NCBI GenBank assembly: GCA_977017575.1
Contig: CDRNVI010000044.1
Location: 1-64,000, forward strand
Length of the DNA stretch: 64,000 bases
Source: Paramoeba atlantica
Lineage: Eukaryota; Protista; Discosea
Reading direction: 5' to 3'
The first letter of the stretch is position 1, and the number at the start of each line of letters is the position of its first letter. The translations under genes were made by a program, and so were the position numbers. Of the stretch, positions 6,966 to 34,624 are shown piece by piece. The notes under the pieces are model-generated. The model was not told where the DNA came from. It did no database searches and was given only the letters and a program-made list of their open reading frames with translations.

Positions 6966-9900
6966 CTACTGCAAAATAAGTGCCGGTTGTGGATCTTCAG
7001 CCGGCATGCGTGAGACAAGCATTCTCGATTGAGAACGCATCAGGGTGAGGTTAAGCTCTTGAAGCAGCTGACGGGTAGCTGCTTCTTGAGATAGAGTCCC
7101 CTGGGAACATGAGGCGCGATGCTTCCCAACCCATCTAAGGATTGATAGGGCACTTGCACTCCAAGCACCATATGATTCTACCACCATGGCAACAAACACA
7201 TGTTTTGCTTGTTCCGCCTCCTCTCTCTCTTTCACCTTGTGAGAAGCGGCGTAGTGCTCCGCAAATGATCCTGCCGCCACCCCGTTAGCGTTGCGGACTA
7301 AGTCCGTGTATTTAGGTTGCTGAACGTGGGTGACAGCAAAATCAAGCACCAGACCTTGAGCTTTCTCATAGCCCGGAATAAAGACATCGCCCGGCCTCGT
7401 GGGACAGCCGCCAGGCCCTAGGTTCCCCAGGCTTACCTCACGTGAAGGTGATAAATTCGCCTTGGAGCACGTGTCGGTGAATTGTGTAATGAGCGCATTG
7501 TGGCGGGAGATCAGTCCATTCCCACTTTTGCAAGACACTGCATGGTTTCCTTCGAGGTCGAGAGGTTGTTGGCATGTGTTAATTGGGCACGTGCTCAACT
7601 CGTTGTAGACCTTGGCACCTAACCACCACCTGGAGAGGGCGCGGAATTCTGTGGGTGTGTAAGCGTGGCCAAGCTCTGTTGATGGGATGCAAAATGCCCA
7701 GCTGCTGGCCCCATCTCCAGTCTGAGAGGTGTACCTCGCGCGAGTGCTACTGTCCGCCGCTGCGTACGCACATGAAAATTCGTGCGCCGAGATTGCGTCG
7801 CTCAAGGCACGTTGACGGGGGGTGCAAGAATTGTCCGTTTCTGTACTTTGACTAGATCCTGTCGGAAAAGGGGAGCTGATCTCCTCTAATGCTCTTCCCG
7901 TGTCCGGATCAACTACGGGGCCTCCGCTCCGGCGATTGATGTCCAGGACTGCGGAAGAGAATCCTTCTGCATCTGACGGTAGCCAACGATCCGTCTCTGC
8001 AGCAAAAGCAACTGAAGACACGTACGCCGCTGAGCGGTGCGCAGATGCAGATCGGAGACCAAAACCTCCATACCGTTTCGGGCGTTGAACTTGTGATCGA
8101 GCTGAGGAGCTAAGCGGGCATATATTCCATTCATACGCATGGAGGACTGCTTCATCAAGACGCTGACAGAGTGCAGAAAGCTCATGTGGTGGGGTAGTTC
8201 GAAGCGAATGGACCATTTGACAAAAACCCGCACACTGTCTGATCAATGACAAGGCAATTTGAGGATCTTCGAGCATTTCTATAGCTTCCAGGGTCTCTTC
8301 TGCCGGTTCCACGGCGTGTGTCGTAAGGAAATCTATGCAATGTTGAGCAGAGCCTATGGGGCTCCCAAGAATGTCAAAATTTCCTTCGCGGTTTATCTTG
8401 GGTTCCGGAATATCGGAAAAAAGAGCAGTTTGGTGTGCCGAGGCAGGGTTCGTTATTATTTCGCATTTAGAGGTATTGATGTGAAGACCCCACTTAGGAC
8501 CAACTCGAGAAAGAGTCTCTAAAGCGAAACTGACGTCTTCGGCCTTACCGGCTATTACCCCGTCGTCGAGGTACCAGAGGTGAAGCTGGAGACTGCCTGG
8601 GAGTGCTTCTTTGATCATTTTCGCGGCTTCGAGCATTACGAGGGAAAAAAGGAGAGGCCCTAGGGGGTCCCCTTGTTGAACCCCCTCGGATGATGGAAGA
8701 GTTCTGGAACCGTAAGTTAGGAGACTATCCGTGGAGTAGGTCCACTCCACCCATGCTGACAATTCTGGAAAATGTTTGCGAAGTAAGGCGATGAACGCAG
8801 ATCTGGATACTCTATTGAACGCGTTCGCTAGGTCCACCTTACATAGCACAAAGTTCGTGTCATCGGCATGGCGGGACATAGTCTGTCGGCAGAGGTGGAT
8901 CACCCTCTCCGATCCGGCTGGCGTGGCAACCCCATACTGTATTCCTTTAAACAAGCGACTAGCTTTTTTCTTGGCTGTTAGACATGCCACTTTACCAACC
9001 AAACGACGGATTGTCTCGCCTGCGGCTATAGGTCGGACGTCACATTCTCCTTTCTGAAGTGCACACAATCTGGCCCCAGCGAAACGTTCCTGAATCTCGA
9101 ATGGAGCTTTTCCAGAAAGAAGCACATTGACTACGTCTGTAAGAGCGGTGAGAGGGTGTACTTTCTCGTCCACGTGGGCACGTAGTGCTATCTGAAGGTG
9201 CTCAGCTCTCAGCGACATCGTTCCGCCAGATGATCCCTTGCGAAAGCTTCCCAAAGCGTGCTTAACTTCTTCTTCGTTTACTTTCAAGGGAGGTGCGTTA
9301 GGGTACGGGAGATCTTGAAGCATGCAGTCCTGCGCACGAGTGGGATGCTTTGCCATCAACTTGCAGTACGTTTCGTCGTTGTCAGGTGCAAAGGGTGCCG
9401 CCGTTAGTGCACTCATTCCACGAGAGACTTCACCCTGGCGTACAAGTTTTTCGCATCGTTCTTTTGCCCTTCTTACTTCTTGCGCAAGCTCCTGGTCTTG
9501 ATCTTGGTCTTTGGTTGATGGGTGCGACGACTTCGTGTTGTTTTTGGTCGCTTCAATCCACAGAGCGGTAAATTCCACTTTTCCCCACCTTTCTAGGCTT
9601 TTTGTCACATGTGAGGCATAAGAAAGACGACCTTTGCGCCCCCCGCGGTTCGGGGCCGGTAGAACGCATTTAGGCAGCATGCCGAGACGGGTCCATGCCG
9701 CTACGGAGTTCTCGCTGGCTACGGAGGATAATACATCGGTGAGCGTTTTCGCCCATTGGTAGCGGCATCGGAATGGAACATCCCTAGAAGTGTTGATAGG
9801 AGTCATGCAAATATCAGAAAGCGATGGTAAAGGAAGAGGTTGGACACTCTGTGAGACATCGGTGCTGCGCGAACCGTGGTCCAATGAACTCTGCGTCAAG

Positions 9901-10907
9901 TTATTCGCGGGATTGGCTACAGAGTCAGTCGAGGTTCCTTTGCAAGCGTTGTCGTGTGTTGCTCGTTTGCCTTCTTCGTAATGTCGCCCGCATTTCTGGC
10001 AGAGAAAGCGCCCTTCGTTCGTCCACCAGGATTCGGGCACTTCATTCGCGTGTCTTGTAGCTACGTGGTTGTAGTAAGCTTGCCACCTGCCGCCATGAGC
10101 GAGTGTTTTCCACACGCACCCTTTAACTGGGCAAGTTTTCAAAGAGTCCTGAGGCGTGCTGCGGAATGCGGCTAAAGACGGAGGAAGTTTGGATTTGCCG
10201 CTTGGTGTTTTGTCTGTCCGGTGACCTGTCGTAGGAAAATAATTCGAGAAGCTTTTCGCTATGTCTCGGCGGCGCTTTTGTTTACCGTTTTGAGTGGGCT
10301 CAGGTGTCACGCTGTCTTCGTGCTCGTCACCCTCGGGGCTTGAAGAGTTGGTACCGTCAGTACACGTCGTTGCCGTTCGTTTTATTCGTTTCTTCTTTCT
10401 CCTACCTTTGCGTTTTGTTGTGATTGTGAAGTCAAGTTCAGTAGGCGTGAGGTCTGGAAACATCATCGCGTTCTCTGTGTCAACGGCACCTTCCATTCTC
10501 CTTGTTCGACGCAGGCATCTCTCCTTCACAGCCCTGTTTGAAGTTTGTAATTGGCTGGGTGAATTTGAGTGCGTTCCCTCGAAATGGAAAGGGGAAGGTT
10601 CATCGTCCCGACGCACACTGCAGTGTATCTCTTCCTCGGTTCTTTCACTTGATAGTTCATTCGCATGCCCCAAATCTGGCGTTGAGTCCTGCGTTGCCGT
10701 CTTCATACTTCGAAGGATTTCGTCCGTTCTCTTTTCCCAGTCCTGAGGAATATCATTAGGGAGGGCTGTGGTGTAGATTAGCTCATCGTACGTGCTAGGT
10801 CCCTTCGCTAAAGATTTGTTTGCCGCAAATTGATCCCAGGACCCAAGTGTGTGAGACGACGCCTCCTCCTCGAAGGTCGGATTTTGCTCTTCAACGGATG
10901 TGGGCAT
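6966..10907 (-). CDS. 1313-aa polyprotein: LsmAD-like N-terminus, two zinc fingers, RT, CCHC, restriction-like endonuclease
   Basis: SWDQFAANK..STYDELIYTT; CPVKGC..HVATRH and CQKC..H..AC; RPIAAGE, QQGDPLGPLLF, YLDDG; CPINTC..H..SC, RHN, RPGD..VLDF. Confidence 0.93.
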   Translation of the reverse strand: MPTSVEEQNPTFEEEASSHTLGSWDQFAANKSLAKGPSTYDELIYTTALPNDIPQDWEKRTDEILRSMKTATQDSTPDLGHANELSSERTEEEIHCSVRRDDEPSPFHFEGTHSNSPSQLQTSNRAVKERCLRRTRRMEGAVDTENAMMFPDLTPTELDFTITTKRKGRRKKKRIKRTATTCTDGTNSSSPEGDEHEDSVTPEPTQNGKQKRRRDIAKSFSNYFPTTGHRTDKTPSGKSKLPPSLAAFRSTPQDSLKTCPVKGCVWKTLAHGGRWQAYYNHVATRHANEVPESWWTNEGRFLCQKCGRHYEEGKRATHDNACKGTSTDSVANPANNLTQSSLDHGSRSTDVSQSVQPLPLPSLSDICMTPINTSRDVPFRCRYQWAKTLTDVLSSVASENSVAAWTRLGMLPKCVLPAPNRGGRKGRLSYASHVTKSLERWGKVEFTALWIEATKNNTKSSHPSTKDQDQDQELAQEVRRAKERCEKLVRQGEVSRGMSALTAAPFAPDNDETYCKLMAKHPTRAQDCMLQDLPYPNAPPLKVNEEEVKHALGSFRKGSSGGTMSLRAEHLQIALRAHVDEKVHPLTALTDVVNVLLSGKAPFEIQERFAGARLCALQKGECDVRPIAAGETIRRLVGKVACLTAKKKASRLFKGIQYGVATPAGSERVIHLCRQTMSRHADDTNFVLCKVDLANAFNRVSRSAFIALLRKHFPELSAWVEWTYSTDSLLTYGSRTLPSSEGVQQGDPLGPLLFSLVMLEAAKMIKEALPGSLQLHLWYLDDGVIAGKAEDVSFALETLSRVGPKWGLHINTSKCEIITNPASAHQTALFSDIPEPKINREGNFDILGSPIGSAQHCIDFLTTHAVEPAEETLEAIEMLEDPQIALSLIRQCAGFCQMVHSLRTTPPHELSALCQRLDEAVLHAYEWNICPLSSSARSQVQRPKRYGGFGLRSASAHRSAAYVSSVAFAAETDRWLPSDAEGFSSAVLDINRRSGGPVVDPDTGRALEEISSPFPTGSSQSTETDNSCTPRQRALSDAISAHEFSCAYAAADSSTRARYTSQTGDGASSWAFCIPSTELGHAYTPTEFRALSRWWLGAKVYNELSTCPINTCQQPLDLEGNHAVSCKSGNGLISRHNALITQFTDTCSKANLSPSREVSLGNLGPGGCPTRPGDVFIPGYEKAQGLVLDFAVTHVQQPKYTDLVRNANGVAAGSFAEHYAASHKVKEREEAEQAKHVFVAMVVESYGAWSASALSILRWVGKHRASCSQGTLSQEAATRQLLQELNLTLMRSQSRMLVSRMPAEDPQPALILQ

Positions 10908-10952: not shown

Positions 10953-10988
10953 CAACAAGGTACAGAAACTGTATCTTTATCGTTAAAG
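10953..10988 (-). other. Spliced-leader exon copy (nt 3-38) at the 5' end of A1
   Basis: Reverse complement reads CTTTAACGATAAAGATACAGTTTCTGTACCTTGTTG, followed by the element 5'UTR rather than GT. Confidence 0.85.
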
Positions 10989-13025: not shown

Positions 13026-13132
13026 AACTTTAACGATACAACCATAACTTTACTCTTTAACGATAAAGATACAGTTTCTGTACCTTGTTGAATTATTTTC
13101 TTTTTTCCTTTCCCCTTTTTGGTTCAACTAGT

Positions 13133-16100
13133 ATGTCCTGCCGCGAACGTCCATGTACACACTCCTCAGAAAATGAAGCGTTCTTAGCAAGAATGGTGAA
13201 CACAGACGACGTTACATTGAACGAGGCGGAGAAATCACACCTTCTTGGTAGTTGGAATCAATTTGAGGGCAACAGACATCTCATCTCAGCTCCCAGTACC
13301 TATGACGAAAGTCTGTACACAACGGAAATCCCGAGGAATATCCCTGCAGAATGGCTACGCCTCGCTGAAAAAAAATCAGACGACCGCGAAACACCGGACA
13401 CGGGACACCACCTAGCCGAGAATGAGGAAATACAACACTGCGCAGTACAACGAAAGGGTACGACAGCCAACCTTGCAGCTAGTATTTCTACTCTGAAATC
13501 AGGGCCAGCAATCAACGCTGCACTGAAGGATGCAATATCACGTCAACAGCGCAATGCGGATGGGATCAAAGGAGTTTCAAAGACGGATAACCGATCACCT
13601 AGGCGACCCTTGGAAACACGAAGGCAACACCAACAGACTATTAAGGACAGCACCCTCGGCGAACAAACGCCGACACGCTCTCAGCCAGCCCACCAGATCC
13701 AATCACCTCCAAAGCATTCCTCCGGCACAAAACCCATGACTAGCGAAACTGGTTGTTCCGAAGCACAATCGGACGGTAGGCGCGAAGACTTTGGCAACAG
13801 ATATGCCCCACGAAACGGAAGCGACAAGCCCCCGCCACTTCCGCAGAGCGCTCCCAAACACCGCATCTGTCCTGCTGAAGGATGCGCCTGGCGCACGATT
13901 GCACATGGAGGGTCTTGGCAAGCATATTATAACCACGTAGCGTACCACCACAGTACCGGCGTCCCGGCTGCATGGTGGGCAGCGGAAGGCAAGTTCCTTT
14001 GTGAAACGTGCGGCAAACACTACACGCTCAACCGTAAAACTACGCACCCGAAGACCTGCATCGGTCAATCAAGTCAAGCAGCACAAATGTCAGTAGATAT
14101 TTTTTCGCAGCACTCCATCGTAACAGAAACCGCCGAATTACCTACTTTGGCAAGTGTCTGCACACTCGCGAAGAGCACATGTAAAGACGTGCCCCACCGA
14201 TGCCGTCAGCTGTGGGCGGAGATCTTAACTAGCGCTTTGAAGGCAGCAGTACAAGAAAACTCAGTAGCGACATGGACACTCCTTGCCATGCTCCCAAAGT
14301 GTGTGTTACCGGCCCCTCGACGCGGAGGGCGTAAAGGCTACATGGCGTACTCATCCCACGTTCGAAAGTGCATGGAGCGATGGATGGCAAAGGAATACAC
14401 TCAGTTGTGGAAAGAGGCAGCCGCTAATAGACGACAACGAAACCCTGACCCCATTTCGGAACAACATGAGGCCCAGAAAGCCGTCATCCGCGCAGAACTT
14501 CTAGTCAGACAAGGTGAATTCTCTAGAGGTATGGCTGCCTTAACCGCAGCGCCAATGGCAGATGAAAACGAAGAAACATATGCAAAGCTGTTGGAGAAGC
14601 ATCCGGCACGTCAAACTACTACGGAAGCCCTCGCCGACCCTCCACCACATGTCAAACATTTGAACCTCGAAGAATCCGATATTAAAGTAGCCATAAACAG
14701 TTTTCGTCGAGGATCTTCAGCAGGTACGATGGGTCTCCGCCCGGAACACTTACAATCCGCGCTTCTTTCCTACGAAGACAAGAATGTTCACCCGCTTCAG
14801 GAACTCACAAACCTAGCTAATCATCTTCTTTCTGGCAAAGCACCCATCGAAGTACAAGCATATTTCGCAGGTGCGCGACTATGTGCGCTCAAGAAGGGGG
14901 AAAACGACGTTCGCCCTATCGCAGCGGGGGAGACTATTCGTCGGTTAGTGAGCAAGGCCGCATGCAGTAGTGTCCGAATGAAAGCGGGGAAATACTTTGA
15001 AGCACAACAATATGGAGTGGCCACCCGAGCAGGGGCAGAACGTATCATTCACCTTTGTAGGCTTGCAATGGACACTGACACAACAAATTCCGATATAGTT
15101 TTATGCAAAGTTGATTTGTCCAACGCATTTAACAACGTTAGCCGTGACGCATTCATCAGTCTCACCAGAGAGCACTTCCCGGAATTGTCCAGATGGGTAG
15201 AATGGTGCTACGTCGAAACCAGTAGCTTAACTTACGGGCACCGTTTCGTACCGTCCGCGGAAGGGGTACAACAGGGCGATCCCCTCGGTCCTCTTCTCTT
15301 TTCCTTAGTCATGTTGGAGGTTACCAAACAAATTCAGTCGTACACGGAACTTCTTCTAAACCTGTGGTACTTAGACGATGGAGTTTTTATAGGGAAAGCG
15401 GAAGAAGTAAGAAAAGCCCTCGACATACTTGATCACCTCGGACCAGGTCAGGGACTACACCTCAATAGCAAGAAATGCGAGATCATCACACTACCCTCAT
15501 CTGCACACCAAACATCTCTTTTCCCAGATATACCAAAAGACAAGCAAAACACAGAAGGAAATTTCGACATCCTAGGAAGCCCTATCGGATCCCACAAACA
15601 CTGCGCCGAATACCTCATGACCAATGCGATCGAACCAGCAGAAGAAACTTTAGTTGCTTCCAGTTTAATTGAGGACCCGCAGGTCGCCATGGCACTGATA
15701 CGACAATGTGCTGGCTTTTGTCAACTGGTCTACGCCCTACGTACAACACCCCCACAATGCATACAACGCGTTTGCGAACATCTAGACAATTCACTGTTGA
15801 GCACAGCAGAGGAAATACTTTGCCCACTGAACGCCCCTGCCCGCGCTCAGATCCAACGCCTGAAGAGACACGGAGGTTTCGGTCTGCGTTCATCGGAAAT
15901 GTACTCGTCTTCAGCTTACATAGCATCTGTGGTGTTCGCAGCAAGCAAGGACGGATGGAATCCACTGGACGCGGAAGGTTTTTCACCTGCCGTCAACGAC
16001 GTGAACGCAAAAGCCGGAGGCACTCTCGTAGATCCCGAAACGGGTCGTTTCCTTTGCCCCACCACCCAACAGCGCGACCGATCACATCCCTCTTTTCCAC

Positions 16101-17098
16101 CAAAGCCACCCATTCACTCTTCCACACAGGTCGATACAGCCCGCGAGCCATCAGACACCGGACCTTTTTTAGATGCTGACCCGCCGTTGGGCGCTGACCT
16201 TGACATAGATATTGACCCGCCAGAATGGGACGAAAGTATCATCCCACGTCATAAAGATATCATCCGCGCTATAGGGGAAAGGGAGTTTAATATAGCATAC
16301 TGTTCCGCTGATACACGAACGCGAACCAGATGGGTATCACAATCAGGGAAAGGGGCTAGCAGCTGGGCATTCGTCACCCCATCGAAGGACCTGGGCTATG
16401 CATTCAAACCCGCGGAGTTTCGAACCTTGTGTCGATGGTGGTTGGGGGTGGATGTATACGGAGAAACTCGTCCATGTCCCTCGGATGAATGCAAACTCCC
16501 TCTGGGTCCTGAAGGGGATCACGCACTCGTGTGCAAACATGGACAAGGTATAATAAACCGGCACAATTCCCTGGTTGAACATTTTTCCTCCTTCTGCGGG
16601 CATGCCTCTTTGGCACCCCAACGAGAGCACAGTCTTGGCAATCGAGGTCCCGGAGGGGGGCTCACCAGACCAGGCGATGTGTTTCTCCCCACGTATTCCA
16701 AGGCTAAAGGCATGGTCCTTGATTTTGCAGTTACCCACGCTCAGCAAACTAAATACACGGACAAAGTTCGTAACGCTAGCTGGGTAGCTGCAGGATCATT
16801 CGCCGAGCACTACGCCGCGGAAAAAAAGGTGCACCAACGGTTGGAGGCTGAGGAAGCAGGCCATGAATTCACAGCCATGGTGGTAGAGAGCTATGGCTCC
16901 TGGAGCGTGAGCGCAACGTCCGTTCTAAAGGGAGTCGGAAAGAGGCGGGCACAGGCCTCAAATGGGACCCTTAAGGAAGAGCAGGCTACAAATAAATTGT
17001 ATGCCGAATTGAATGTGACCCTCATGCGAGCACAAGCTCGTATGATGGTTACACGCATGGCTGTGCCCGACCCGAACGAGCCCATCACGGAAGGATAG
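13133..17098 (+). CDS. Polyprotein: LsmAD-like domain, zinc fingers, RT, CCHC, RLE (first ATG at 13133; tracked ORF from 13085)
   Basis: GSWNQFEGN..STYDESLYTT; CPAEGC..H..H; QQGDPLGPLLF; YLDDG; RHN; RPGD..VLDF. Confidence 0.93.
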   Translation: MSCRERPCTHSSENEAFLARMVNTDDVTLNEAEKSHLLGSWNQFEGNRHLISAPSTYDESLYTTEIPRNIPAEWLRLAEKKSDDRETPDTGHHLAENEEIQHCAVQRKGTTANLAASISTLKSGPAINAALKDAISRQQRNADGIKGVSKTDNRSPRRPLETRRQHQQTIKDSTLGEQTPTRSQPAHQIQSPPKHSSGTKPMTSETGCSEAQSDGRREDFGNRYAPRNGSDKPPPLPQSAPKHRICPAEGCAWRTIAHGGSWQAYYNHVAYHHSTGVPAAWWAAEGKFLCETCGKHYTLNRKTTHPKTCIGQSSQAAQMSVDIFSQHSIVTETAELPTLASVCTLAKSTCKDVPHRCRQLWAEILTSALKAAVQENSVATWTLLAMLPKCVLPAPRRGGRKGYMAYSSHVRKCMERWMAKEYTQLWKEAAANRRQRNPDPISEQHEAQKAVIRAELLVRQGEFSRGMAALTAAPMADENEETYAKLLEKHPARQTTTEALADPPPHVKHLNLEESDIKVAINSFRRGSSAGTMGLRPEHLQSALLSYEDKNVHPLQELTNLANHLLSGKAPIEVQAYFAGARLCALKKGENDVRPIAAGETIRRLVSKAACSSVRMKAGKYFEAQQYGVATRAGAERIIHLCRLAMDTDTTNSDIVLCKVDLSNAFNNVSRDAFISLTREHFPELSRWVEWCYVETSSLTYGHRFVPSAEGVQQGDPLGPLLFSLVMLEVTKQIQSYTELLLNLWYLDDGVFIGKAEEVRKALDILDHLGPGQGLHLNSKKCEIITLPSSAHQTSLFPDIPKDKQNTEGNFDILGSPIGSHKHCAEYLMTNAIEPAEETLVASSLIEDPQVAMALIRQCAGFCQLVYALRTTPPQCIQRVCEHLDNSLLSTAEEILCPLNAPARAQIQRLKRHGGFGLRSSEMYSSSAYIASVVFAASKDGWNPLDAEGFSPAVNDVNAKAGGTLVDPETGRFLCPTTQQRDRSHPSFPPKPPIHSSTQVDTAREPSDTGPFLDADPPLGADLDIDIDPPEWDESIIPRHKDIIRAIGEREFNIAYCSADTRTRTRWVSQSGKGASSWAFVTPSKDLGYAFKPAEFRTLCRWWLGVDVYGETRPCPSDECKLPLGPEGDHALVCKHGQGIINRHNSLVEHFSSFCGHASLAPQREHSLGNRGPGGGLTRPGDVFLPTYSKAKGMVLDFAVTHAQQTKYTDKVRNASWVAAGSFAEHYAAEKKVHQRLEAEEAGHEFTAMVVESYGSWSVSATSVLKGVGKRRAQASNGTLKEEQATNKLYAELNVTLMRAQARMMVTRMAVPDPNEPITEG

Positions 17099-23570: not shown

Positions 23571-23883
23571 TCATAACATAACGAAATTAAATAATCCCAC
23601 AACACTTCTGTCCTCTCCCAGCTTGCGAACGGGTGACGCGGGGACCACCCATTCGCTCGTCCTACTTCCATTTACAACCCAATCGCACGTTGATGTATTT
23701 CAGCGGTGCCTACTCCGCCCAAATAAATCATAAGGAAATTCCGTATCGCTCACCGTGCCCGTGCTTCTCGATATTCACTGCTACATTGTTTTTTTTGCAT
23801 ATAATTGGGGGGAGTAGTATTGAGTCTAACTATTGAGTCTTTTCTGTACCTTGTTGATTTTAATTTTCTATTTTTCTACGCTT

Positions 23884-26800
23884 ATGACACGCCTTTCTCG
23901 TACGTCTTCTCGTTTAGATTCCGAAAACACGCGGAAAAAGGGCAGCAGAACAACAGTGAACAACGGGAAGTCTCACGGGAGAGTTGAAAAACAACGTACT
24001 CAACGAGATCAAAGCAAGACGAACGGAATAAAGGTAGCAGAAGAATCAGGATCGCACACGGAGACACCAGTGAAGGTGAAGAAGACTCCAAAGATCAAGA
24101 TAATAGGTTCCAAAACACTAGCCCCGAATTGGGCGGACCATGAGCCTCCGTGTGAAATCACATCGCGGAATCTAATCAAAATCAAAGCCAAGAACTTCCG
24201 CATCGGATCTACGAGTCAATCACACGAGAACATAGCCCATGACGAAAACCATATCCAAGAGGACCCAGCCAAAGAAATGTCCGAAACAGAAAGCGAGACC
24301 AGTGATACAATGTGTCTGGACGACGATGGATCGACGCAAGATCGAGTACAGGAGCTAATGACACAGGCCGGCAACAAATCGCCCGACCAAGTGTACAACA
24401 TCGTTTCCAAGTGGGGCAAGGGTACAGAATGTGTGATCGAATGGGGCTTCCGACAGAACACTACAAACTACAAGTCAAACGGCATCGTTGTAGGCAGGAC
24501 CGTGCGAAAATCAACCGTGAAAGTCAAGATTTCATACGAGCCGGCTCTAGGTCACGATGGTCCATGCGGTTTTCTTTATCTTCCACCGTCCAATAAAATC
24601 AGAATCTGTAACCTCCAAGCCACTAAGTTATTCAAAATCGAGATGCCGACACAAAATTTGGAGGAACAAGCGGAGCACATCTCATGCGAAGACGGTCAGA
24701 GTGACCTTGATCCGCTCCCGCCTATGGCTCAAATAGACCCATCTTTCGCGGTTCATGTTGTGGCGATTTTCCGTGCGATAATTCGGGGATATGCAGCGGC
24801 GGAGCTTGACTCAGAAAAAGAGGCGATATGGCACAAATTTTTGAATGCGCCTCGCGATTCACTTGCGACAGTACGTCAAGCAATTCGACGAAACCAAAAA
24901 GTAGCTCATGTTCGCAACGACCGAGAAAACTTGGAAGCTAGCAACTTGAGTGCGGAACAACGGGCGGAGTTAGAAATTGACAGGCGTTCGATCAGGCACG
25001 CCCTACAGACGGCGCGGGCAGGAAACCTTGGCAAAGCAACTCGGATCCTGGACAATGTCTACAAGGAATCAGCTCTCACTCCTGAAGAAAAAGTGCGAAA
25101 GCTTCAACAACTTCATCCTGAAGGCGACGCCATACGAATCCCGGAAGCAGACTTCCCACGGACTGGCGTTGTTGAGAAATCAGAGGTTCGCCTAGCGACC
25201 GAAAAATTATCCAGAGGCGCTTCACCAGGACCAACCGGCCTGAGTGAAAGCATGATGCGACTGCTCGTAGACGACGAAGAGTCATGTCTTTCACTTTGCC
25301 ACATGCTTCGGGATGTCATCAACGGCGAAGTTCCTCTGAATGTGCGAAAACGTCTAACCCGATGCAGAATCATCGCGCTAGCGAAACCTCAAAATGGAAT
25401 TCGACCTATTGCGATGGGGGATACCATTCTGAAGATTTGCGGTTCCATCCTTCTACAACGACATGAAAACGCTCTGCAAAATTTTTTCTCCCCAATTCAA
25501 CGAGGCATTTTGCAAAAAAACGCATGTGAGTCCATCGTTCACGAACTTTTAAATGAATACGAAGAAGGACATGCTATCCTCACCGTCGATTTTAGCAACG
25601 CGTATAATACACCACAACGCAACGCCATTGCTGAGGCACTCCTTGGTAATCCCATTTTCAAGCCTTTCATGCGCCTATTCTACCTAGAATATGGGATTCC
25701 CTCTGAGCTGCTATTTTTTGCGCACAATGCTCTGTTTGCTACCATCGAAAGCTCTTCAGGAATTCGCCAAGGATCGGCACTTTCATCAATGTACTTCTGC
25801 GCACTTTTGCAAGGCCCGCTACGAGAACTCATGCACCTCTATCCTGACGTGAAGATCCGAGCATACCAAGACGATGTGACTTTGAGCTCCAAAAACGTGC
25901 AAGCATTGGAGGCAGCTTTCTTTTACCTGCGTGAGATCGCCGCAGAGATGAACCTCCGAATTAATTTCCAGAAATGCGATTGGTTTCAGAAGAACATTCC
26001 CAACATAGCTCAGCCTCCTCCGTTGGAAAAACTTGGAGTAAACTTTTGCAGTGATGCGATAAAAGTCTTAGGCGCATACGTAGGTACAGACCAAGTCGTG
26101 GAAAATCTGCTGATCAAGAAAATGGAGAAACACAAGTGCCTATTCCGCAGGTTGTTGCTTATGGGTCCCAGTAATTTGTCTCTTGCCATTCTCCGCCGTT
26201 GTACGATTCCACGGCACGATTACCATCTACGAGTACATCGGCCAGGCGCTACTTTCCAACTAGCACAATCCTTCGAGAACCAAGTAAACAAAGTTCTAGA
26301 AAAGTGGAGTGGAGCAGACGCAAACGCCCTGAAACTCGCCGCTCTACCACAGAAACTCGGTGGCCTAGGCTTAATTTCCTCGACTCTGAAGCAAAAACAT
26401 TTCTTCGAAACTGCCAGCAAATCTATTGATGAGCACCTTAAACCCAATAACGCTCCGGTAGATCAGAAAGGCAGCGAAAAAGCTATGAAACAACCGCAAA
26501 GTCGAGGAGAGGCAGCGCGCAAGCTATTGAAAAAGAAGCTAAGTGCAGAACACGATAAACAGATAACTGAGCTGCAGAAGGATTCTCACATGGGACTTTT
26601 ATTGAAGCGTACAAAGGAATCAAACATGCATTTAGAAAGCACCAGCAATTATGTAAACCCGTACCTCTTCCGATACACTTTGATGATGCGTTTGGGCATC
26701 GGATTACATAACGCACCGGCCGATGTTATATGCCCTGGATGCTGTGGCCATGAATCTCCTACCAGCATTATACCACACGTCGCAGGATGCTCCCGGTGCT

Positions 26801-27372
26801 CGGGCATGAATTGCACCAGAAAGCACTCACACATAGTGAGGTACCTCGCAGATTTGTGCTCCAAAGCTGGTCTCCCTTGTATTATCGAACCGCGCATCCA
26901 TTCTTCGTTTTTCTGTACTAAGTGCAAGTGTTCCATCTCAGCGGAAGTAGCTGAACATCATCCTTGCAAAGCCCGCAGAATCCGATCCGGTCCTGATCTT
27001 GCTATTATGTGGCCCCACATGGGGGAGGTCCTGTATGATTTTACCGTTGTTCACACTTGTTGCAGCAGCTATGCCAAACAAACAAGTACAGCGCTGATGC
27101 AGCACGTGCTCGACAAGAAATTCAAGAAGTACGTTACGGAGAAAGGCGTAGAAATCGACTCTTTTCGTTGCCTGGCCGCCTCTGACTGCGGTCTTCTGCA
27201 CAACGACACCAAAACCCTCCTCAAGGCATTATCCCAACGAGCCAAACAAAAGTACGAAGACGTACGTGAGGCCTTCCAACTCGAGATAGAAAAGCTAGCA
27301 GCGTATACTATTGTATCGCAGCTCCGCGAGTATATTCCAGAAGCACATTGGATTGGTGGACTGCGTCAGTGA
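23884..27372 (+). CDS. Family B RT/RLE polyprotein, 1162 aa, copy 1 (tracked ORF from 23833)
   Basis: RPIAMG, DFSNAYN, RQGSALS, AYQDDV, LPQKLGGLGL, CPGC..H..GC, RKH, GPDL..YDF; preceded by the SL 3' end. Confidence 0.9.
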   Translation: MTRLSRTSSRLDSENTRKKGSRTTVNNGKSHGRVEKQRTQRDQSKTNGIKVAEESGSHTETPVKVKKTPKIKIIGSKTLAPNWADHEPPCEITSRNLIKIKAKNFRIGSTSQSHENIAHDENHIQEDPAKEMSETESETSDTMCLDDDGSTQDRVQELMTQAGNKSPDQVYNIVSKWGKGTECVIEWGFRQNTTNYKSNGIVVGRTVRKSTVKVKISYEPALGHDGPCGFLYLPPSNKIRICNLQATKLFKIEMPTQNLEEQAEHISCEDGQSDLDPLPPMAQIDPSFAVHVVAIFRAIIRGYAAAELDSEKEAIWHKFLNAPRDSLATVRQAIRRNQKVAHVRNDRENLEASNLSAEQRAELEIDRRSIRHALQTARAGNLGKATRILDNVYKESALTPEEKVRKLQQLHPEGDAIRIPEADFPRTGVVEKSEVRLATEKLSRGASPGPTGLSESMMRLLVDDEESCLSLCHMLRDVINGEVPLNVRKRLTRCRIIALAKPQNGIRPIAMGDTILKICGSILLQRHENALQNFFSPIQRGILQKNACESIVHELLNEYEEGHAILTVDFSNAYNTPQRNAIAEALLGNPIFKPFMRLFYLEYGIPSELLFFAHNALFATIESSSGIRQGSALSSMYFCALLQGPLRELMHLYPDVKIRAYQDDVTLSSKNVQALEAAFFYLREIAAEMNLRINFQKCDWFQKNIPNIAQPPPLEKLGVNFCSDAIKVLGAYVGTDQVVENLLIKKMEKHKCLFRRLLLMGPSNLSLAILRRCTIPRHDYHLRVHRPGATFQLAQSFENQVNKVLEKWSGADANALKLAALPQKLGGLGLISSTLKQKHFFETASKSIDEHLKPNNAPVDQKGSEKAMKQPQSRGEAARKLLKKKLSAEHDKQITELQKDSHMGLLLKRTKESNMHLESTSNYVNPYLFRYTLMMRLGIGLHNAPADVICPGCCGHESPTSIIPHVAGCSRCSGMNCTRKHSHIVRYLADLCSKAGLPCIIEPRIHSSFFCTKCKCSISAEVAEHHPCKARRIRSGPDLAIMWPHMGEVLYDFTVVHTCCSSYAKQTSTALMQHVLDKKFKKYVTEKGVEIDSFRCLAASDCGLLHNDTKTLLKALSQRAKQKYEDVREAFQLEIEKLAAYTIVSQLREYIPEAHWIGGLRQ

Positions 27373-29254
27373 GTCGACCAACAAGTTCGCACATTAGAAA
27401 AGCTCTTAAAAGTTCTTATTATTATTCACAACGATTATCCGTGTTTAGAATGCCTGCGAGATTTAGGATAATACGAACGATCTTTGGGAGAAGGCTCAGA
27501 AAAAAAAAAAAAAAAAATAGAATATATTTTAGAAGAAAGAATTTTTCAGTCTTGAACCATACAAGATATTGGGCGTCCGGTGAAGTCAAGACCTTTGCTT
27601 GGCCCGTTCGATTTTGAAGAAATACAAGATTTTCGTAGTGAAAGTTCGAGCTCATAGCGGAAACTTTATGAATGAACTCGTGGACAAACTAGCGAACGAG
27701 GCAGCAGTCGAACTCGTGCGTGAACCAGTGAATCCCTCAACCACAGCGTGTAGAGTTATAAATTCTACGGCCGAATGCGGCCATAAGTGCCGTGATAAGG
27801 CCTCATGTCTACATTCCTGTTGTAAGCGACATTTAGGAGTAGCGAAGGATAATGTCAACATTTCTTTGTCATAATAGTCGAACACTTAGCCACTTAGTCA
27901 GAAAGTGGTATATTATTATTATTATATTATTATTAAGCTCGGAATATATCTCCGAATGTCTTATCAGGTGCCCTAGAAGTCGTGCCCGGTTTACCTTATG
28001 TAGTGTGGAGAATAATGGTGTGTCAACGTAAAGGGCAGTAAGAGGTATACTTTTACCACGGTGGTCCAATTTTGGGCAACGACATATGATGCGACGCATT
28101 TTGTTTACCTGAATGTCTACCCAATTTAACGTTTTATCCGTCAATACAAGAGTACCTGAGTTATAGTTCAGAACGGGGTAAACCAGTGTATCGAAAAGGC
28201 GAAGTTTAGTTTTCACAGATAGTGGTGATATCCATATTCCTTGAAATTTTGAGAAGCTTGCCCAGGTAAGCCGCACCCTGTCCCTAATGCACGCCTTGGG
28301 GTCCTGTTCATGAAAAAGGTGCCCTAGGTAACGGTAACTCTCGACGTGTGGAACCTTTCCCAATGTATCGGATATTATTTCTTCGATGTTGTTATTTTTT
28401 CCTATGCTCATCCAGGCGGTTTTGGTGGGCCCAACAGCAATCTTTAAATTCGCAGCAAGAATTGTGCATCATAAATATTATAAGAAAGAAAGAAAGCACT
28501 AAGCAAAACAATATCTTCATTCCCCTCTTCTATCTGATATTTGATACGTTCAATTCTATGCACATTCAAAATTCATATGAATACTTTTTTTTTTTTTTTT
28601 TTTTTTTTTATCATGCAGTATGACTGCAGAGATTGTCACCTAAGAAAAATACACGCAGATCATGTATAAACCCCGCACAAAACGGGTTTCCCTTAAGCTT
28701 TTCATCATCGCTATATGCTGGCTTCCGTCCAGCTCGGGTTATCGCGGTTTTGAAAAATCGCGAAACTTCCTCGTATTGCTCTTTTGACAAGCTTCTGTCG
28801 ACATTGCGAGGCGGTGGCCTTGTTACCTCCGAAAAGTGAGTTGAGCGCTCGCGTAGAGGAGTTGAGCTTCCCTCTGGCCCCCACTTCGATGACAAGAAGA
28901 AAGGTTGCCGTGTTAGTCATTTTCCTTTCGAGTATGACCGGTCATAACATAACGAAATTAAATAATCCCACAACACTTCTGTCCTCTCCCAGCTTGCGAA
29001 CGGGTGACGCGGGGACCACCCATTCGCTCGTCCTACTTCCATTTACAACCCAATCGCACGTTGATGTATTTCAGCGGTGCCTACTCCGCCCAAATAAATC
29101 ATAAGGAAATTCCGTATCGCTCACCGTGCCCGTGCTTCTCGATATTCACTGCTACATTGTTTTTTTTGCATATAATTGGGGGGAGTAGTATTGAGTCTAA
29201 CTATTGAGTCTTTTCTGTACCTTGTTGATTTTAATTTTCTATTTTTCTACGCTT

Positions 29255-32200
29255 ATGACACGCCTTTCTCGTACGTCTTCTCGTTTAGATTCCGAAAACA
29301 CGCGGAAAAAGGGCAGCAGAACAACAGTGAACAACGGGAAGTCTCACGGGAGAGTTGAAAAACAACGTACTCAACGAGATCAAAGCAAGACGAACGGAAT
29401 AAAGGTAGCAGAAGAATCAGGATCGCACACGGAGACACCAGTGAAGGTGAAGAAGACTCCAAAGATCAAGATAATAGGTTCCAAAACACTAGCCCCGAAT
29501 TGGGCGGACCATGAGCCTCCGTGTGAAATCACATCGCGGAATCTAATCAAAATCAAAGCCAAGAACTTCCGCATCGGATCTACGAGTCAATCACACGAGA
29601 ACATAGCCCATGACGAAAACCATATCCAAGAGGACCCAGCCAAAGAAATGTCCGAAACAGAAAGCGAGACCAGTGATACAATGTGTCTGGACGACGATGG
29701 ATCGACGCAAGATCGAGTACAGGAGCTAATGACACAGGCCGGCAACAAATCGCCCGACCAAGTGTACAACATCGTTTCCAAGTGGGGCAAGGGTACAGAA
29801 TGTGTGATCGAATGGGGCTTCCGACAGAACACTACAAACTACAAGTCAAACGGCATCGTTGTAGGCAGGACCGTGCGAAAATCAACCGTGAAAGTCAAGA
29901 TTTCATACGAGCCGGCTCTAGGTCACGATGGTCCATGCGGTTTTCTTTATCTTCCACCGTCCAATAAAATCAGAATCTGTAACCTCCAAGCCACTAAGTT
30001 ATTCAAAATCGAGATGCCGACACAAAATTTGGAGGAACAAGCGGAGCACATCTCATGCGAAGACGGTCAGAGTGACCTTGATCCGCTCCCGCCTATGGCT
30101 CAAATAGACCCATCTTTCGCGGTTCATGTTGTGGCGATTTTCCGTGCGATAATTCGGGGATATGCAGCGGCGGAGCTTGACTCAGAAAAAGAGGCGATAT
30201 GGCACAAATTTTTGAATGCGCCTCGCGATTCACTTGCGACAGTACGTCAAGCAATTCGACGAAACCAAAAAGTAGCTCATGTTCGCAACGACCGAGAAAA
30301 CTTGGAAGCTAGAAACTTGAGTGCGGAACAACGGGCGGAGTTAGAAATTGACAGGCGTTCGATCAGGCACGCCCTACAGACGGCGCGGGCAGGAAACCTT
30401 GGCAAAGCAACTCGGATCCTGGACAATGTCTACAAGGAATCAGCTCTCACTCCTGAAGAAAAAGTGCGAAAGCTTCAACAACTTCATCCTGAAGGCGACG
30501 CCATACGAATCCCGGAAGCAGACTTCCCACGGACTGGCGTTGTTGAGAAATCAGAGGTTCGCCTAGCGACCGAAAAATTATCCAGAGGCGCTTCACCAGG
30601 ACCAACCGGCCTGAGTGAAAGCATGATGCGACTGCTCGTAGACGACGAAGAGTCATGTCTTTCACTTTGCCACATGCTTCGGGATGTCATCAACGGCGAA
30701 GTTCCTCTGAATGTGCGAAAACGTCTAACCCGATGCGGAATCATCGCGCTAGCGAAACCTCAAAATGGAATTCGACCTATTGCGATGGGGGATACCATTC
30801 TGAAGATTTGCGGTTCCATCCTTCTACAACGACATGAAAACGCTCTGCAAAATTTTTTCTCCCCAATTCAACGAGGCATTTTGCAAAAAAACGCATGTGA
30901 GTCCATCGTTCACGAACTTTTAAATGAATACGAAGAAGGACATGCTATCCTCACCGTCGATTTTAGCAACGCGTATAATACACCACAACGCAACGCCATT
31001 GCTGAGGCACTCCTTGGTAATCCCATTTTCAAGCCTTTCATGCGCCTATTCTACCTAGAATATGGGATTCCCTCTGAGCTGCTATTTTTTGCGCACAATG
31101 CTCTGTTTGCTACCATCGAAAGCTCTTCAGGAATTCGCCAAGGATCGGCACTTTCATCAATGTACTTCTGCGCACTTTTGCAAGGCCCGCTACGAGAACT
31201 CATGCACCTCTATCCTGACGTGAAGATCCGAGCATACCAAGACGATGTGACTTTGAGCTCCAAAAACGTGCAAGCATTGGAGGCAGCTTTCTTTTACCTG
31301 CGTGAGATCGCCGCAGAGATGAACCTCCGAATTAATTTCCAGAAATGCGATTGGTTTCAGAAGAACATTCCCAACATAGCTCAGCCTCCTCCGTTGGAAA
31401 AACTTGGAGTAAACTTTTGCAGTGATGCGATAAAAGTCTTAGGCGCATACGTAGGTACAGACCAAGTCGTGGAAAATCTGCTGATCAAGAAAATGGAGAA
31501 ACACAAGTGCCTATTCCGCAGGTTGTTGCTTATGGGTCCCAGTAATTTGTCTCTTGCCATTCTCCGCCGTTGTACGATTCCACGGCACGATTACCATCTA
31601 CGAGTACATCGGCCAGGCGCTACTTTCCAACTAGCACAATCCTTCGAGAACCAAGTAAACAAAGTTCTAGAAAAGTGGAGTGGAGCAGACGCAAACGCCC
31701 TGAAACTCGCCGCTCTACCACAGAAACTCGGTGGCCTAGGCTTAATTTCCTCGACTCTGAAGCAAAAACATTTCTTCGAAACTGCCAGCAAATCTATTGA
31801 TGAGCACCTTAAACCCAATAACGCTCCGGTAGATCAGAAAGGCAGCGAAAAAGCTATGAAACAACCGCAAAGTCGAGGAGAGGCAGCGCGCAAGCTATTG
31901 AAAAAGAAGCTAAGTGCAGAACACGATAAACAGATAACTGAGCTGCAGAAGGATTCTCACATGGGACTTTTATTGAAGCGTACAAAGGAATCAAACATGC
32001 ATTTAGAAAGCACCAGCAATTATGTAAACCCGTACCTCTTCCGATACACTTTGATGATGCGTTTGGGCATCGGATTACATAACGCACCGGCCGATGTTAT
32101 ATGCCCTGGATGCTGTGGCCATGAATCTCCTACCAGCATTATACCACACGTCGCAGGATGCTCCCGGTGCTCGGGCATGAATTGCACCAGAAAGCACTCA

Positions 32201-32743
32201 CACATAGTGAGGTACCTCGCAGATTTGTGCTCCAAAGCTGGTCTCCCTTGTATTATCGAACCGCGCATCCATTCTTCGTTTTTCTGTACTAAGTGCAAGT
32301 GTTCCATCTCAGCGGAAGTAGCTGAACATCATCCTTGCAAAGCCCGCAGAATCCGATCCGGTCCTGATCTTGCTATTATGTGGCCCCACATGGGGGAGGT
32401 CCTGTATGATTTTACCGTTGTTCACACTTGTTGCAGCAGCTATGCCAAACAAACAAGTACAGCGCTGATGCAGCACGTGCTCGACAAGAAATTCAAGAAG
32501 TACGTTACGGAGAAAGGCGTAGAAAGCGACTCTTTTCGTTGCCTGGCCGCCTCTGACTGCGGTCTTCTGCACAACGACACCAAAACCCTCCTCAAGGCAT
32601 TATCCCAACGAGCCAAACAAAAGTACGAAGACGTACGTGAGGCCTTCCAACTCGAGATAGAAAAGCTAGCAGCGTATACTATTGTATCGCAGCTCCGCGA
32701 GTATATTCCAGAAGCACATTGGATTGGTGGACTGCGTCAGTGA
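29255..32743 (+). CDS. Family B RT/RLE polyprotein, copy 2
   Basis: As copy 1, with two private substitutions (EARNL, TRCGI). Confidence 0.9.
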   Translation: MTRLSRTSSRLDSENTRKKGSRTTVNNGKSHGRVEKQRTQRDQSKTNGIKVAEESGSHTETPVKVKKTPKIKIIGSKTLAPNWADHEPPCEITSRNLIKIKAKNFRIGSTSQSHENIAHDENHIQEDPAKEMSETESETSDTMCLDDDGSTQDRVQELMTQAGNKSPDQVYNIVSKWGKGTECVIEWGFRQNTTNYKSNGIVVGRTVRKSTVKVKISYEPALGHDGPCGFLYLPPSNKIRICNLQATKLFKIEMPTQNLEEQAEHISCEDGQSDLDPLPPMAQIDPSFAVHVVAIFRAIIRGYAAAELDSEKEAIWHKFLNAPRDSLATVRQAIRRNQKVAHVRNDRENLEARNLSAEQRAELEIDRRSIRHALQTARAGNLGKATRILDNVYKESALTPEEKVRKLQQLHPEGDAIRIPEADFPRTGVVEKSEVRLATEKLSRGASPGPTGLSESMMRLLVDDEESCLSLCHMLRDVINGEVPLNVRKRLTRCGIIALAKPQNGIRPIAMGDTILKICGSILLQRHENALQNFFSPIQRGILQKNACESIVHELLNEYEEGHAILTVDFSNAYNTPQRNAIAEALLGNPIFKPFMRLFYLEYGIPSELLFFAHNALFATIESSSGIRQGSALSSMYFCALLQGPLRELMHLYPDVKIRAYQDDVTLSSKNVQALEAAFFYLREIAAEMNLRINFQKCDWFQKNIPNIAQPPPLEKLGVNFCSDAIKVLGAYVGTDQVVENLLIKKMEKHKCLFRRLLLMGPSNLSLAILRRCTIPRHDYHLRVHRPGATFQLAQSFENQVNKVLEKWSGADANALKLAALPQKLGGLGLISSTLKQKHFFETASKSIDEHLKPNNAPVDQKGSEKAMKQPQSRGEAARKLLKKKLSAEHDKQITELQKDSHMGLLLKRTKESNMHLESTSNYVNPYLFRYTLMMRLGIGLHNAPADVICPGCCGHESPTSIIPHVAGCSRCSGMNCTRKHSHIVRYLADLCSKAGLPCIIEPRIHSSFFCTKCKCSISAEVAEHHPCKARRIRSGPDLAIMWPHMGEVLYDFTVVHTCCSSYAKQTSTALMQHVLDKKFKKYVTEKGVESDSFRCLAASDCGLLHNDTKTLLKALSQRAKQKYEDVREAFQLEIEKLAAYTIVSQLREYIPEAHWIGGLRQ

Positions 32744-34624
32744 GTCGACCAACAAGTTCGCACATTAGAAAAGCTCTTAAAAGTTCTTATTATTATTCAC
32801 AACGATTATCCGTGTTTAGAATGCCTGCGAGATTTAGGATAATACGAACGATCTTTGGGAGAAGGCTCAGAAAAAAAAAAAAAAAAAAATAGAATATATT
32901 TTAGAAGAAAGAATTTTTCAGTCTTGAACCATACAAGATATTGGGCGTCCGGTGAAGTCAAGACCTTTGCTTGGCCCGTTCGATTTTGAAGAAATACAAG
33001 ATTTTCGTAGTGAAAGTTCGAGCTCATAGCGGAAACTTTATGAATGAACTCGTGGACAAACTAGCGAACGAGGCAGCAGTCGAACTCGTGCGTGAACCAG
33101 TGAATCCCTCAACCACAGCGTGTAGAGTTATAAATTCTACGGCCGAATGCGGCCATAAGTGCCGTGATAAGGCCTCATGTCTACATTCCTGTTGTAAGCG
33201 ACATTTAGGAGTAGCGAAGGATAATGTCAACATTTCTTTGTCATAATAGTCGAACACTTAGCCACTTAGTCAGAAAGTGGTATATTATTATTATTATATT
33301 ATTATTAAGCTCGGAATATATCTCCGAATGTCTTATCAGGTGCCCTAGAAGTCGTGCCCGGTTTACCTTATGTAGTGTGGAGAATAATGGTGTGTCAACG
33401 TAAAGGGCAGTAAGAGGTATACTTTTACCACGGTGGTCCAATTTTGGGCAACGACATATGATGCGACGCATTTTGTTTACCTGAATGTCTACCCAATTTA
33501 ACGTTTTATCCGTCAATACAAGAGTACCTGAGTTATAGTTCAGAACGGGGTAAACCAGTGTATCGAAAAGGCGAAGTTTAGTTTTCACAGATAGTGGTGA
33601 TATCCATATTCCTTGAAATTTTGAGAAGCTTGCCCAGGTAAGCCGCACCCTGTCCCTAATGCACGCCTTGGGGTCCTGTTCATGAAAAAGGTGCCCTAGG
33701 TAACGGTAACTCTCGACGTGTGGAACCTTTCCCAATGTATCGGATATTATTTCTTCGATGTTGTTATTTTTTCCTATGCTCATCCAGGCGGTTTTGGTGG
33801 GCCCAACAGCAATCTTTAAATTCGCAGCAAGAATTGTGCATCATAAATATTATAAGAAAGAAAGAAAGCACTAAGCAAAACAATATCTTCATTCCCCTCT
33901 TCTATCTGATATTTGATACGTTCAATTCTATGCACATTCAAAATTCATATGAATACTTTTTTTTTTTTTTTTTTTTTTTATCATGCAGTATGACTGCAGA
34001 GATTGTCACCTAAGAAAAATACACGCAGATCATGTATAAACCCCGCACAAAACGGGTTTCCCTTAAGCTTTTCATCATCGCTATATGCTGGCTTCCGTCC
34101 AGCTCGGGTTATCGCGGTTTTGAAAAATCGCGAAACTTCCTCGTATTGCTCTTTTGACAAGCTTCTGTCGACATTGCGAGGCGGTGGCCTTGTTACCTCC
34201 GAAAAGTGAGTTGAGCGCTCGCGTAGAGGAGTTGAGCTTCCCTCTGGCCCCCACTTCGATGACAAGAAGAAAGGTTGCCGTGTTAGTCATTTTCCTTTCG
34301 AGTATGACCGGTCATAACATAACGAAATTAAATAATCCCACAACACTTCTGTCCTCTCCCAGCTTGCGAACGGGTGACGCGGGGACCACCCATTCGCTCG
34401 TCCTACTTCCATTTACAACCCAATCGCACGTTGATGTATTTCAGCGGTGCCTACTCCGCCCAAATAAATCATAAGGAAATTCCGTATCGCTCACCGTGCC
34501 CGTGCTTCTCGATATTCACTGCTACATTGTTTTTTTTGCATATAATTGGGGGGAGTAGTATTGAGTCTAACTATTGAGTCTTTTCTGTACCTTGTTGATT
34601 TTAATTTTCTATTTTTCTACGCTT

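Follow-up and report, generated by a model that had tools for sequence, protein, structure and literature searches.

Elements of the CRE clade interrupt the spliced leader (SL) exon of SL RNA genes and, to our knowledge, carry only zinc fingers ahead of their reverse transcriptase (RT). Here, we describe retrotransposons found in the first 64,000 nucleotides of contig CDRNVI010000044.1 of the Paramoeba atlantica assembly GCA_977017575.1, the stretch of DNA referred to below as the window. Like CRE1/CRE2, SLACS, and CZAR, these elements encode a single large protein with N-terminal zinc fingers, an RT, and a C-terminal CCHC motif and restriction-like endonuclease (RLE), and like them they combine a kinetoplastid-type host with a physical association with the SL. 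The proteins of family A in the window additionally contain, ahead of the zinc fingers, an island of about 85 to 95 residues that profile comparisons identify as LsmAD (PF06741), a domain of ataxin-2/Pbp1. We regard the family A element as a non-LTR (long terminal repeat) retrotransposon that very probably captured a host domain, a combination for which we found no earlier description.

Ataxin-2 is a disease gene (SCA2, or spinocerebellar ataxia type 2, as well as ALS, or amyotrophic lateral sclerosis). Proteins of this family also have a documented relation to retroelements. In yeast, Pbp1 binds the 3' end of Ty1 mRNA, shields it from Trf4-dependent turnover, and promotes retromobility, and knockdown of ATXN2 lowers the level of LINE-1 and HERV RNA (PMC6218562). 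In both of these cases the host protein acts in trans, whereas the elements described here encode a piece of Pbp1 themselves; what the systems would have in common is that ataxin-2/Pbp1 function at the mRNA 3' end is tied to the success of a retroelement. The LSm domain, and not LsmAD, binds LSM12 (PMC11166328), the LSm/LSmAD region of ataxin-2 reportedly binds DDX6 (cited in PMC12898128), and a 2026 survey of the ataxin-2 family presents LsmAD as the unique hallmark of the family and states that insights into what it does or binds are lacking (PMC12898128). A full-text literature search returned no description of an LsmAD-bearing retrotransposon or reverse transcriptase, the sole relevant paper being the Ty1/Pbp1 host-factor work, and the 2026 survey, which deals with ataxin-2 "chimerisms," mentions neither transposons nor reverse transcriptase. 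The original prediction, which was made from the sequence of the window, had stated that no described retroelement was known to carry this domain, and the literature searches turned up none.

The N-terminal island and its homology to LsmAD

The island had been predicted in five family A proteins, A1 to A4 and A6, and all five islands were found at the places given for them:

10593..10880, minus strand: LsmAD island of A1, 96 codons, enclosing 10614-10850; identified by translation, by alignment, and by its position in the element clade in both trees
6966..10907, minus strand: open reading frame (ORF) of element A1, 1313 aa, RVT_1 61.7 bits
13211-13498, plus strand: LsmAD island of A2, in ORF 13085-17098; Pfam LsmAD 17.3 bits in the protein scan
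43821-44108, plus strand: LsmAD island of A3, in ORF 43728-47990; Pfam LsmAD 27.4 bits in the protein scan and 31.7 bits in the genome scan
51468-51755, plus strand: LsmAD island of A4, in ORF 51420-55220; aligns end to end and falls inside the element clade
59947-60234, minus strand: LsmAD island of A6, a broken copy; Pfam LsmAD 26.3 bits in the genome scan
59518-60552, 58351-59514, and 56521-58227, all minus strand: ORF fragments of A6

Read on the minus strand, positions 10614-10850 correspond to codons 20 to 98 of the A1 ORF, which translate as ...TLGSWDQFAANKSLAKGPSTYDELIYTTALPNDIPQDWEKR...EEEIHCSVRR, while the plus strand of this interval is interrupted by stop codons throughout. The A1 protein starts with MPTSVEEQNPTFEEEASSHTLGSWDQFAANKSLAKGPSTYDELIYTTALPNDIPQDWEKR...EEEIHCSVRR, and the order of its parts is LsmAD island, low-complexity linker, two zinc-finger-like motifs, RT, and C-terminal CCHC and RLE motifs. 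The island is N-terminal and about 85 to 95 residues long in all five family A proteins, and in most families it begins 23 to 54 residues past the first methionine. When 18 islands from the window and from other contigs were aligned, the mean column identity was 52%, and H, G, W, Q, F, N, L, S, Y-T-T, P, T.D.G, and E were invariant; the consensus given in the original prediction matches this alignment. One seemingly intact element of 1352 aa (L050:1676-5731, minus strand) reads SYDQF at the position of the otherwise invariant WDQF, so that its Trp is replaced.

Pfam represents LsmAD by a 72-position model with a curated gathering cut-off of 25 bits. Taken singly, the islands of the window gave scores on both sides of this value: A1 reached 14.0 bits alone in the protein scan and 19.3 bits in a six-frame scan of the genome, A2 ranged from 17 to 22 bits across scans and was below the cut-off alone, and the A4 island alone had no Pfam match at an E-value of <1. 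A six-frame scan of the 45.7-Mb assembly with PF06741 gave at least 151 matches, about 100 of them above the cut-off. These matches lie mostly in open frames of 1190 to 1480 aa, and many span model positions 4 to 72; the top score among the elements was 37.5 bits, and the element at L034 scored 28.9 bits. The same six-frame scan of 14 control genomes returned no match; the matches in this genome are thus far more than chance would give.

We also built a profile from the 18 element islands alone and compared it with 1.84 billion representative proteins, which yielded 1433 matches at an E-value of ≤1e-3. Those matches from outside this organism that we sampled were proteins with SM-ATX and LsmAD (one also with PAM2) or other LsmAD proteins. 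Profile searches in the two directions gave E-values of 1e-10 to 1e-21 and covered the whole 72-position model. The residues that do not vary among the 18 islands coincide with the invariant positions of 18 canonical Lsm-LsmAD regions, the shared conserved residues being W-(D)-Q-F, N, (S)T, E, Y-T-T, and the acidic C-terminal E-E..S.V. Compared with the LsmAD of ataxin-2, Pbp1, and plant CID proteins, the islands keep the common motif order, G.WDQF..N..L....STY(D/N)E.LYTT followed by a helix and an acidic EE..(F/H)(S/C).V.R end, but they have a shorter part after the helix, a new invariant TPDTG, and a location at the N-terminus of an RT-endonuclease protein. Judged from profile searches that agree in both directions, the island is a genuine LsmAD domain, as had been proposed from the window alone. 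The island profile also matched P0155 at 21 places, but this is a bacterial Ig-repeat protein, and we discarded it as a false positive.

Structural models were supportive of LsmAD homology and are used here in that role only. The AlphaFold2 model of the island (predicted local distance difference test [pLDDT] score, 70.5) consists of a short helix, a second short helix, and a long helix, and the same pattern was seen in the model of the host LsmAD described below; core pLDDT values were 76 to 88 for the island and 50 to 78 for the host domain. In a shape search of the ESM Atlas, the three best matches were LsmAD clusters, with template modeling (TM) scores of only 0.30 to 0.46. A sequence search of the PDB with the island profile gave chance-level matches only (E-values of 0.44 and worse) and no LsmAD structure.

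Origin of the island and selection on it

The host's own ataxin-2/Pbp1 gene lies on the same contig as the elements:

L031:3848-6736, contig of the window, at a distance of about 270 kb: host ataxin-2/Pbp1 gene, SM-ATX 31.1 bits, LsmAD 48.6 bits

Two near-identical copies of this gene, L031 and L032, are the two best PF06741 matches in the genome (48.6 to 48.9 bits), and in both SM-ATX is followed by LsmAD. The host Pbp1 protein has a PAM2-like motif, LNPNARAFTP, and its LsmAD (EKSHRAGSWDQFKANEHLVRGKSTYDELLYTTSIPKNL...) shares with the elements an upstream H..G and an IP after LYTT. Against the element-only profile, the LsmAD of the host gene on the window's contig scored 82 bits, the best foreign canonical ataxin-2 scored 63.5 bits, and a second ATXN2 gene, on contig C163, scored 43.9 bits. 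A word-index homologue search with the host Lsm-LsmAD region returned no match. The second ataxin-2-like gene (L033; G000 contig C163, about 169.0 to 169.3 kb) is intron split, has a GC content of 33.6%, and encodes a canonical LsmAD; the locus evidently belongs to a different AT-rich, intron-rich organism that was coassembled with the kinetoplastid-type genome.

In a maximum-likelihood tree of 61 LsmADs (about 100 columns), the element islands formed one clade (support values, 99/97), the elements and the host gene grouped together (98/79), and the elements, the host gene, and a foreign metagenome protein, P0143, were united (99/89) against 41 other LsmADs, among which fell the diplonemid paralogues and the AT-rich C163 gene. 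A quick tree agreed. By this comparison, no nonelement LsmAD in the sample is nearer to the island than the one encoded by the host's ataxin-2/Pbp1 gene. Because the element clade is sister to the host LsmAD in the maximum-likelihood tree, the island is very probably an LsmAD homologue that the elements captured a single time from the host lineage's ataxin-2/Pbp1 gene. The capture of a host module had been part of the original prediction, and it gained support from the finding of the Pbp1 orthologue and from the tree, which puts the LsmAD of this gene nearest to the element islands. Mechanistically, part of a host ataxin-2/Pbp1 mRNA would have been taken up once, probably through template switching during reverse transcription.

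LsmAD is not exclusive to the ataxin-2 architecture in Euglenozoa, since diplonemid proteins carry LsmADs without SM-ATX. P0133 (Diplonema papillatum KAJ9472136.1) and P0140 (Flectonema neradi) contain PDZ, two or three LsmAD repeats, and RRM, and no SM-ATX; P0144, P0145, and P0151 also carry LsmAD (P0151 together with PDZ), and their LsmADs form one clade with those of P0133 and P0140. In contrast to the element proteins, the PDZ-LsmAD-RRM proteins P0133 and P0140 are cellular and have no RT, and their LsmADs belong to a clade of their own (100/98), to which the element islands are not sister.

We then compared the conservation of the island with that of the remaining protein in 21 full-length element proteins, using the mean pairwise identity per 25-column block. 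Identity was 0.32 to 0.62 in the island (0.62 at its core), 0.05 to 0.25 in the linker that occupies the next ~300 columns, 0.46 to 0.52 in the zinc-finger region, and 0.60 to 0.67 in the RT core. These per-block values bear out the description of the island as lying within an otherwise unalignable N-terminus. A single pair of elements, L034/L045, had unsaturated synonymous sites (dS of about 0.6), all other pairs being near saturation. For this pair, the ratio of nonsynonymous to synonymous substitution (dN/dS) was 0.14 in the island, 0.33 in the alignable part of the linker, 0.07 in the zinc fingers, 0.12 in the RT, and 0.06 in the endonuclease. Five further subfamily pairs, with dS near saturation, had an island dN/dS of 0.07 to 0.22, and over all pairs the ratio was 0.14 to 0.33 in the alignable linker and 0.05 to 0.12 in the RT. 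These substitution patterns show that purifying selection acts on the island as strongly as on the zinc fingers and nearly as strongly as on the RT; with its lower dN/dS and higher identity than the flanking linker, it has been kept by selection, as predicted. Many copies are 99 to 100% identical and have open frames of equal length, and the island-bearing proteins therefore come from recently active elements.

The linkers of one group of lineage A elements hold short conserved motifs of their own, F.FEG..S.SQL..SN.AVK (three repeats in A3) and FPDLTP.DL.F, together with a basic GRKKKKRPK stretch that resembles a nuclear localization signal. The motif sites are located at 10200-10600 (minus strand) and 44110-44500 (plus strand) of the window and in the linkers of L034, L036, L037, L045, L046, L049, and L052.

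Element anatomy, the spliced leader, and two RT lineages

With RT, CCHC, and PD..D..K-type motifs in one ORF and a poly(A) 3' end, the elements have the predicted makeup of non-LTR retrotransposons with an RLE. RVT_1 scores ranged from 52 to 81 bits across the elements, and both RT lineages (see below) end in CCHC and in RHN / (R)P(G/A)D / D(F)AV endonuclease motifs, which were read by eye rather than with an endonuclease profile. By their predicted domains, the elements are not ataxin-2/Pbp1 orthologues, having neither the LSm (SM-ATX) domain nor the PAM2 motif: SM-ATX had no match in any element protein, and a pattern scan of the 21 full-length element proteins found no PAM2-like motif. The SM-ATX matches in the genome were the host Pbp1 gene, in both of its copies, and an LSM14/SCD6-like gene; the latter was the sole extra match when a host LSM12 candidate was sought through SM-ATX, and it was rejected as such. 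The window elements were also searched for a 2A-like site that would release the island from the remaining protein; none was found, and the island should therefore remain fused to the RT protein.

The ends of the elements were defined by the SL and by poly(A), as illustrated by A1 and A4:

10953..10972, minus strand: 3' part of the SL of A1, 46 nt upstream of the A1 start codon, an exact match to the SL 20-mer
51336-51373: SL of A4, upstream of ORF 51420-55220
about 55677-55697: poly(A) tail of A4

The exact SL 20-mer occurs 6 times in the window, compared with 0 expected by chance. Throughout the lineage A elements examined, the 3' part of the SL is found 120 to 210 nt before the WDQF codons, and in all lineage A copies the SL 3' end (...CAGTTTCTGTACCTTGTTG) adjoins the 5' untranslated region (UTR). 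The SL 5' end is raggedly truncated in this lineage, often straight after the poly(A) of a neighboring element. An SL joined to the 5'UTR at one end and a poly(A) tail at the other suggest a template that resembles a mature trans-spliced, polyadenylated mRNA. In the 3'UTR of A4 (window 55269-55562), contigs of run X1 of the organism were 25 to 40 times deeper than over the ORF, and this 3'UTR segment is therefore common to many more copies than the coding part. A search for expression turned up no RNA run containing the element; a single run with the same species label, presumed to be RNA, had nothing that matched it, which is no sign that the elements are silent.

This arrangement differs from that of the CRE clade, in which the elements interrupt the SL exon. 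In neither lineage did we find the elements inserted at one constant position within the SL exon: the SL abuts the 5'UTR in lineage A, and lineage B has no SL within 500 nt. The best database relatives were metagenome and sponge proteins and included no SLACS-type entries, and no named CRE, SLACS, or CZAR sequence was among the database search matches. The CRE/SLACS label that the original prediction had attached to the elements is thus not established, since the SL runs with its 3' end into the element, in the manner of a trans-spliced mRNA, and is not interrupted.

The island occurs in two RT lineages. The RT core of L042, L043, and L044 is only 24 to 28% identical to that of all other island-bearing elements, and their zinc-finger and endonuclease regions barely align with the others (17 to 19%). 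The island of these three elements, in contrast, is 43% identical to the other islands and is nested inside the element clade. From about residue 170 to the end, L042 to L044 are 54 to 56% identical to family B of the window, which differs from them in its N-terminus:

23833..27372, plus strand: first copy of family B, a second-lineage RT-RLE element with neither island nor SL

Family B is present as four tandem copies (window 23833-43483; starts at 23833, 29204, 34574, and 39944) with a period of 5371 bp and an ORF of 1179 aa, and it had no Pfam LsmAD match and no SL upstream. The presence of the island in L042 to L044 and its absence from family B indicate that it was gained or lost within lineage B. 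Because the capture seems younger than the split between the host and P0143, and because the RT lineages are deeply diverged, the simpler reading would be that the N-terminal module was passed between element lineages.

All RT proteins with the island in large public collections come from this organism; one of them, P0008, is encoded by a European Nucleotide Archive (ENA) contig that shows 100% identity to contig C17 of this genome. Over RT and RLE, the nearest foreign elements share 41 to 43% identity with A3, and they lack the island. Two metagenome sister elements, P0014 and P0016, end in an MLLE, the domain by which poly(A)-binding protein (PABP) binds PAM2, with scores of 46.8 and 49.3 bits. 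The P0014 ORF corresponds to L055:529-5661, on a contig that starts with an SL-like 3' end (TCTGTACTTTATTG) and ends in poly(A), and it has a 2A-like DVEKNPGP motif near its N-terminus that the window elements lack. The domains in the two sets of elements both come from the PABP/ataxin-2 network, but P0014 and P0016 carry a C-terminal MLLE and no LsmAD island, which suggests that related elements of another SL-bearing protist took a different piece of this network. A literature search found no paper that links MLLE with non-LTR retrotransposons.

Several other loci are of note. Further island-bearing open frames in the genome measure 1505 to 2073 aa. A third architecture is represented by P0153, a 365-aa frame with an unrecognized N-terminus and a C-terminal LsmAD island of 26.4 bits (G000 C48:75467-76546 and C90:84283-85362). 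Tandem units spaced ~2.28 kb apart at G000 C21:15-11627 and C22:139443-155644 contain frames of ~100 to 225 aa with island-like sequence and may be nonautonomous or truncated derivatives. At the left edge of the window itself, an open frame on the minus strand at 653-1594 strongly matches DNA polymerase family A (461.9 bits) and lies beside RNase H-bearing and RT-bearing fragments.

Possible functions of the island

Taken as a whole, the explanation we favor, and hold to be somewhat better than an even bet, is that a host LsmAD was captured, was exchanged between element lineages, and serves as a docking module. Published facts on LsmAD, Pbp1, and Ty1 point to a protein-docking module that keeps its ancestral contact surface, and such a module would fold on its partner. 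As the part of the protein that leaves the ribosome first, the island would anchor the nascent RT protein in cis on the poly(A)-tail/Pbp1-type messenger ribonucleoprotein (mRNP) of its own SL-bearing, polyadenylated mRNA. This tether would stabilize the element RNA and would bring the RT close to the 3' end, the starting point of target-primed reverse transcription. We put at a little under even the chances that the island has this particular target, a poly(A)/Pbp1-type mRNP formed on the element's own mRNA. The original prediction had raised docking on poly(A)/PABP mRNPs or on granules as a conjecture, and it keeps that standing here.

Several observations weigh against this explanation or its parts. 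Single-copy Pfam scores are modest, with A1 itself under the cut-off, and the homology claim consequently rests on the family as a whole. The canonical helix residues A..A..IE are partly kept but no longer invariant in the elements, and TPDTG has been gained, so that the partner of the element domain may differ from that of ataxin-2. The tree comprises only about 100 columns and foreign sequences that carry no taxonomy, and the sister relation to the host gene holds among the sampled LsmADs, which did not include named trypanosomatid Pbp1. A complex prediction for the island and the LSm domain of host Pbp1 gave a score of 0.00, although this was run without controls and is evidence neither way.

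Of the competing explanations, the one that survives best, though we consider it unlikely, is that the island is a decoy, a lone LsmAD that competes with host ataxin-2/Pbp1 for the LsmAD partner and thereby disables silencing or sequestering of element RNA through granule storage or DDX6/DHH1-dependent decay. The separation of LsmAD from LSm and PAM2, the RNA and PABP contacts of ataxin-2, is what would be expected of a dominant-negative fragment, the LSm/LSmAD region is the one reported to bind DDX6 (cited in PMC12898128), and the copy number of the elements is very high. However, Pbp1/ATXN2 aids rather than restricts retroelements in the systems tested so far (PMC6218562). A decoy could also do without fusion to the RT. 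The island, however, is in every case an in-frame N-terminal part of the RT protein, and there is no 2A-like release site. The step of partner binding is common to the decoy and to docking.

Less probable still is a role internal to the element and unrelated to ataxin-2, such as self-association of the ORF protein, contact with its own structured 3'UTR RNA alongside the zinc fingers, or nuclear or nucleolar targeting. The changed helix residues and the invariant TPDTG, which is not seen in canonical LsmAD, would fit a new role, as would the higher confidence of AlphaFold2 for the core of the island than for the host domain, and in single-ORF elements without a separate gag-like ORF1 some part of the protein must serve in the assembly of the ribonucleoprotein. 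Nevertheless, the most conserved positions of the island (W-Q-F, N, S-T-Y, Y-T-T, and E-E) are canonical LsmAD invariants, which argues that the ancestral contact surface was kept. Finally, a neutral relic of an accidental fusion, or an LsmAD-like motif that arose by convergence, could account for the weak single-copy Pfam scores in the window (14 to 27 bits) and for the one false positive of the element profile, but this reading is close to refuted by the E-values of the two-way profile searches over the whole model, by dN/dS values of 0.07 to 0.22 and a conservation equal to that of the RT across lineages with saturated synonymous sites, and by the retention of the island in two RT lineages.

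We return to docking and to what the elements mean for the ataxin-2 family and for non-LTR retrotransposons. With more than 150 copies in many diverged subfamilies, the elements provide a natural stand-alone LsmAD that is under strong selection without LSm or PAM2, which argues that LsmAD works on its own. The islands form a comparative data set on which LsmAD residues may vary and offer a simple bait for the partner of the domain. For the retrotransposons, LsmAD is a new kind of accessory domain, encoded in an N-terminal module common to RT lineages with just ~25% identity. Alongside the sister elements that bear MLLE, it raises the possibility that cis-preference is reached by recruiting the poly(A)-tail mRNP directly. 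More tentatively, and at longer odds than docking itself, LsmAD might be a module that binds, autonomously, some core component of the poly(A)-tail mRNP, and RLE elements of SL-trans-splicing protists might repeatedly have taken pieces of the PABP/ataxin-2 network, LsmAD in one case and MLLE in another, as a cis tether. If this is true, the elements would amount to a natural separation-of-function experiment that would reveal the partner and the role of the defining domain of the ataxin-2 family.

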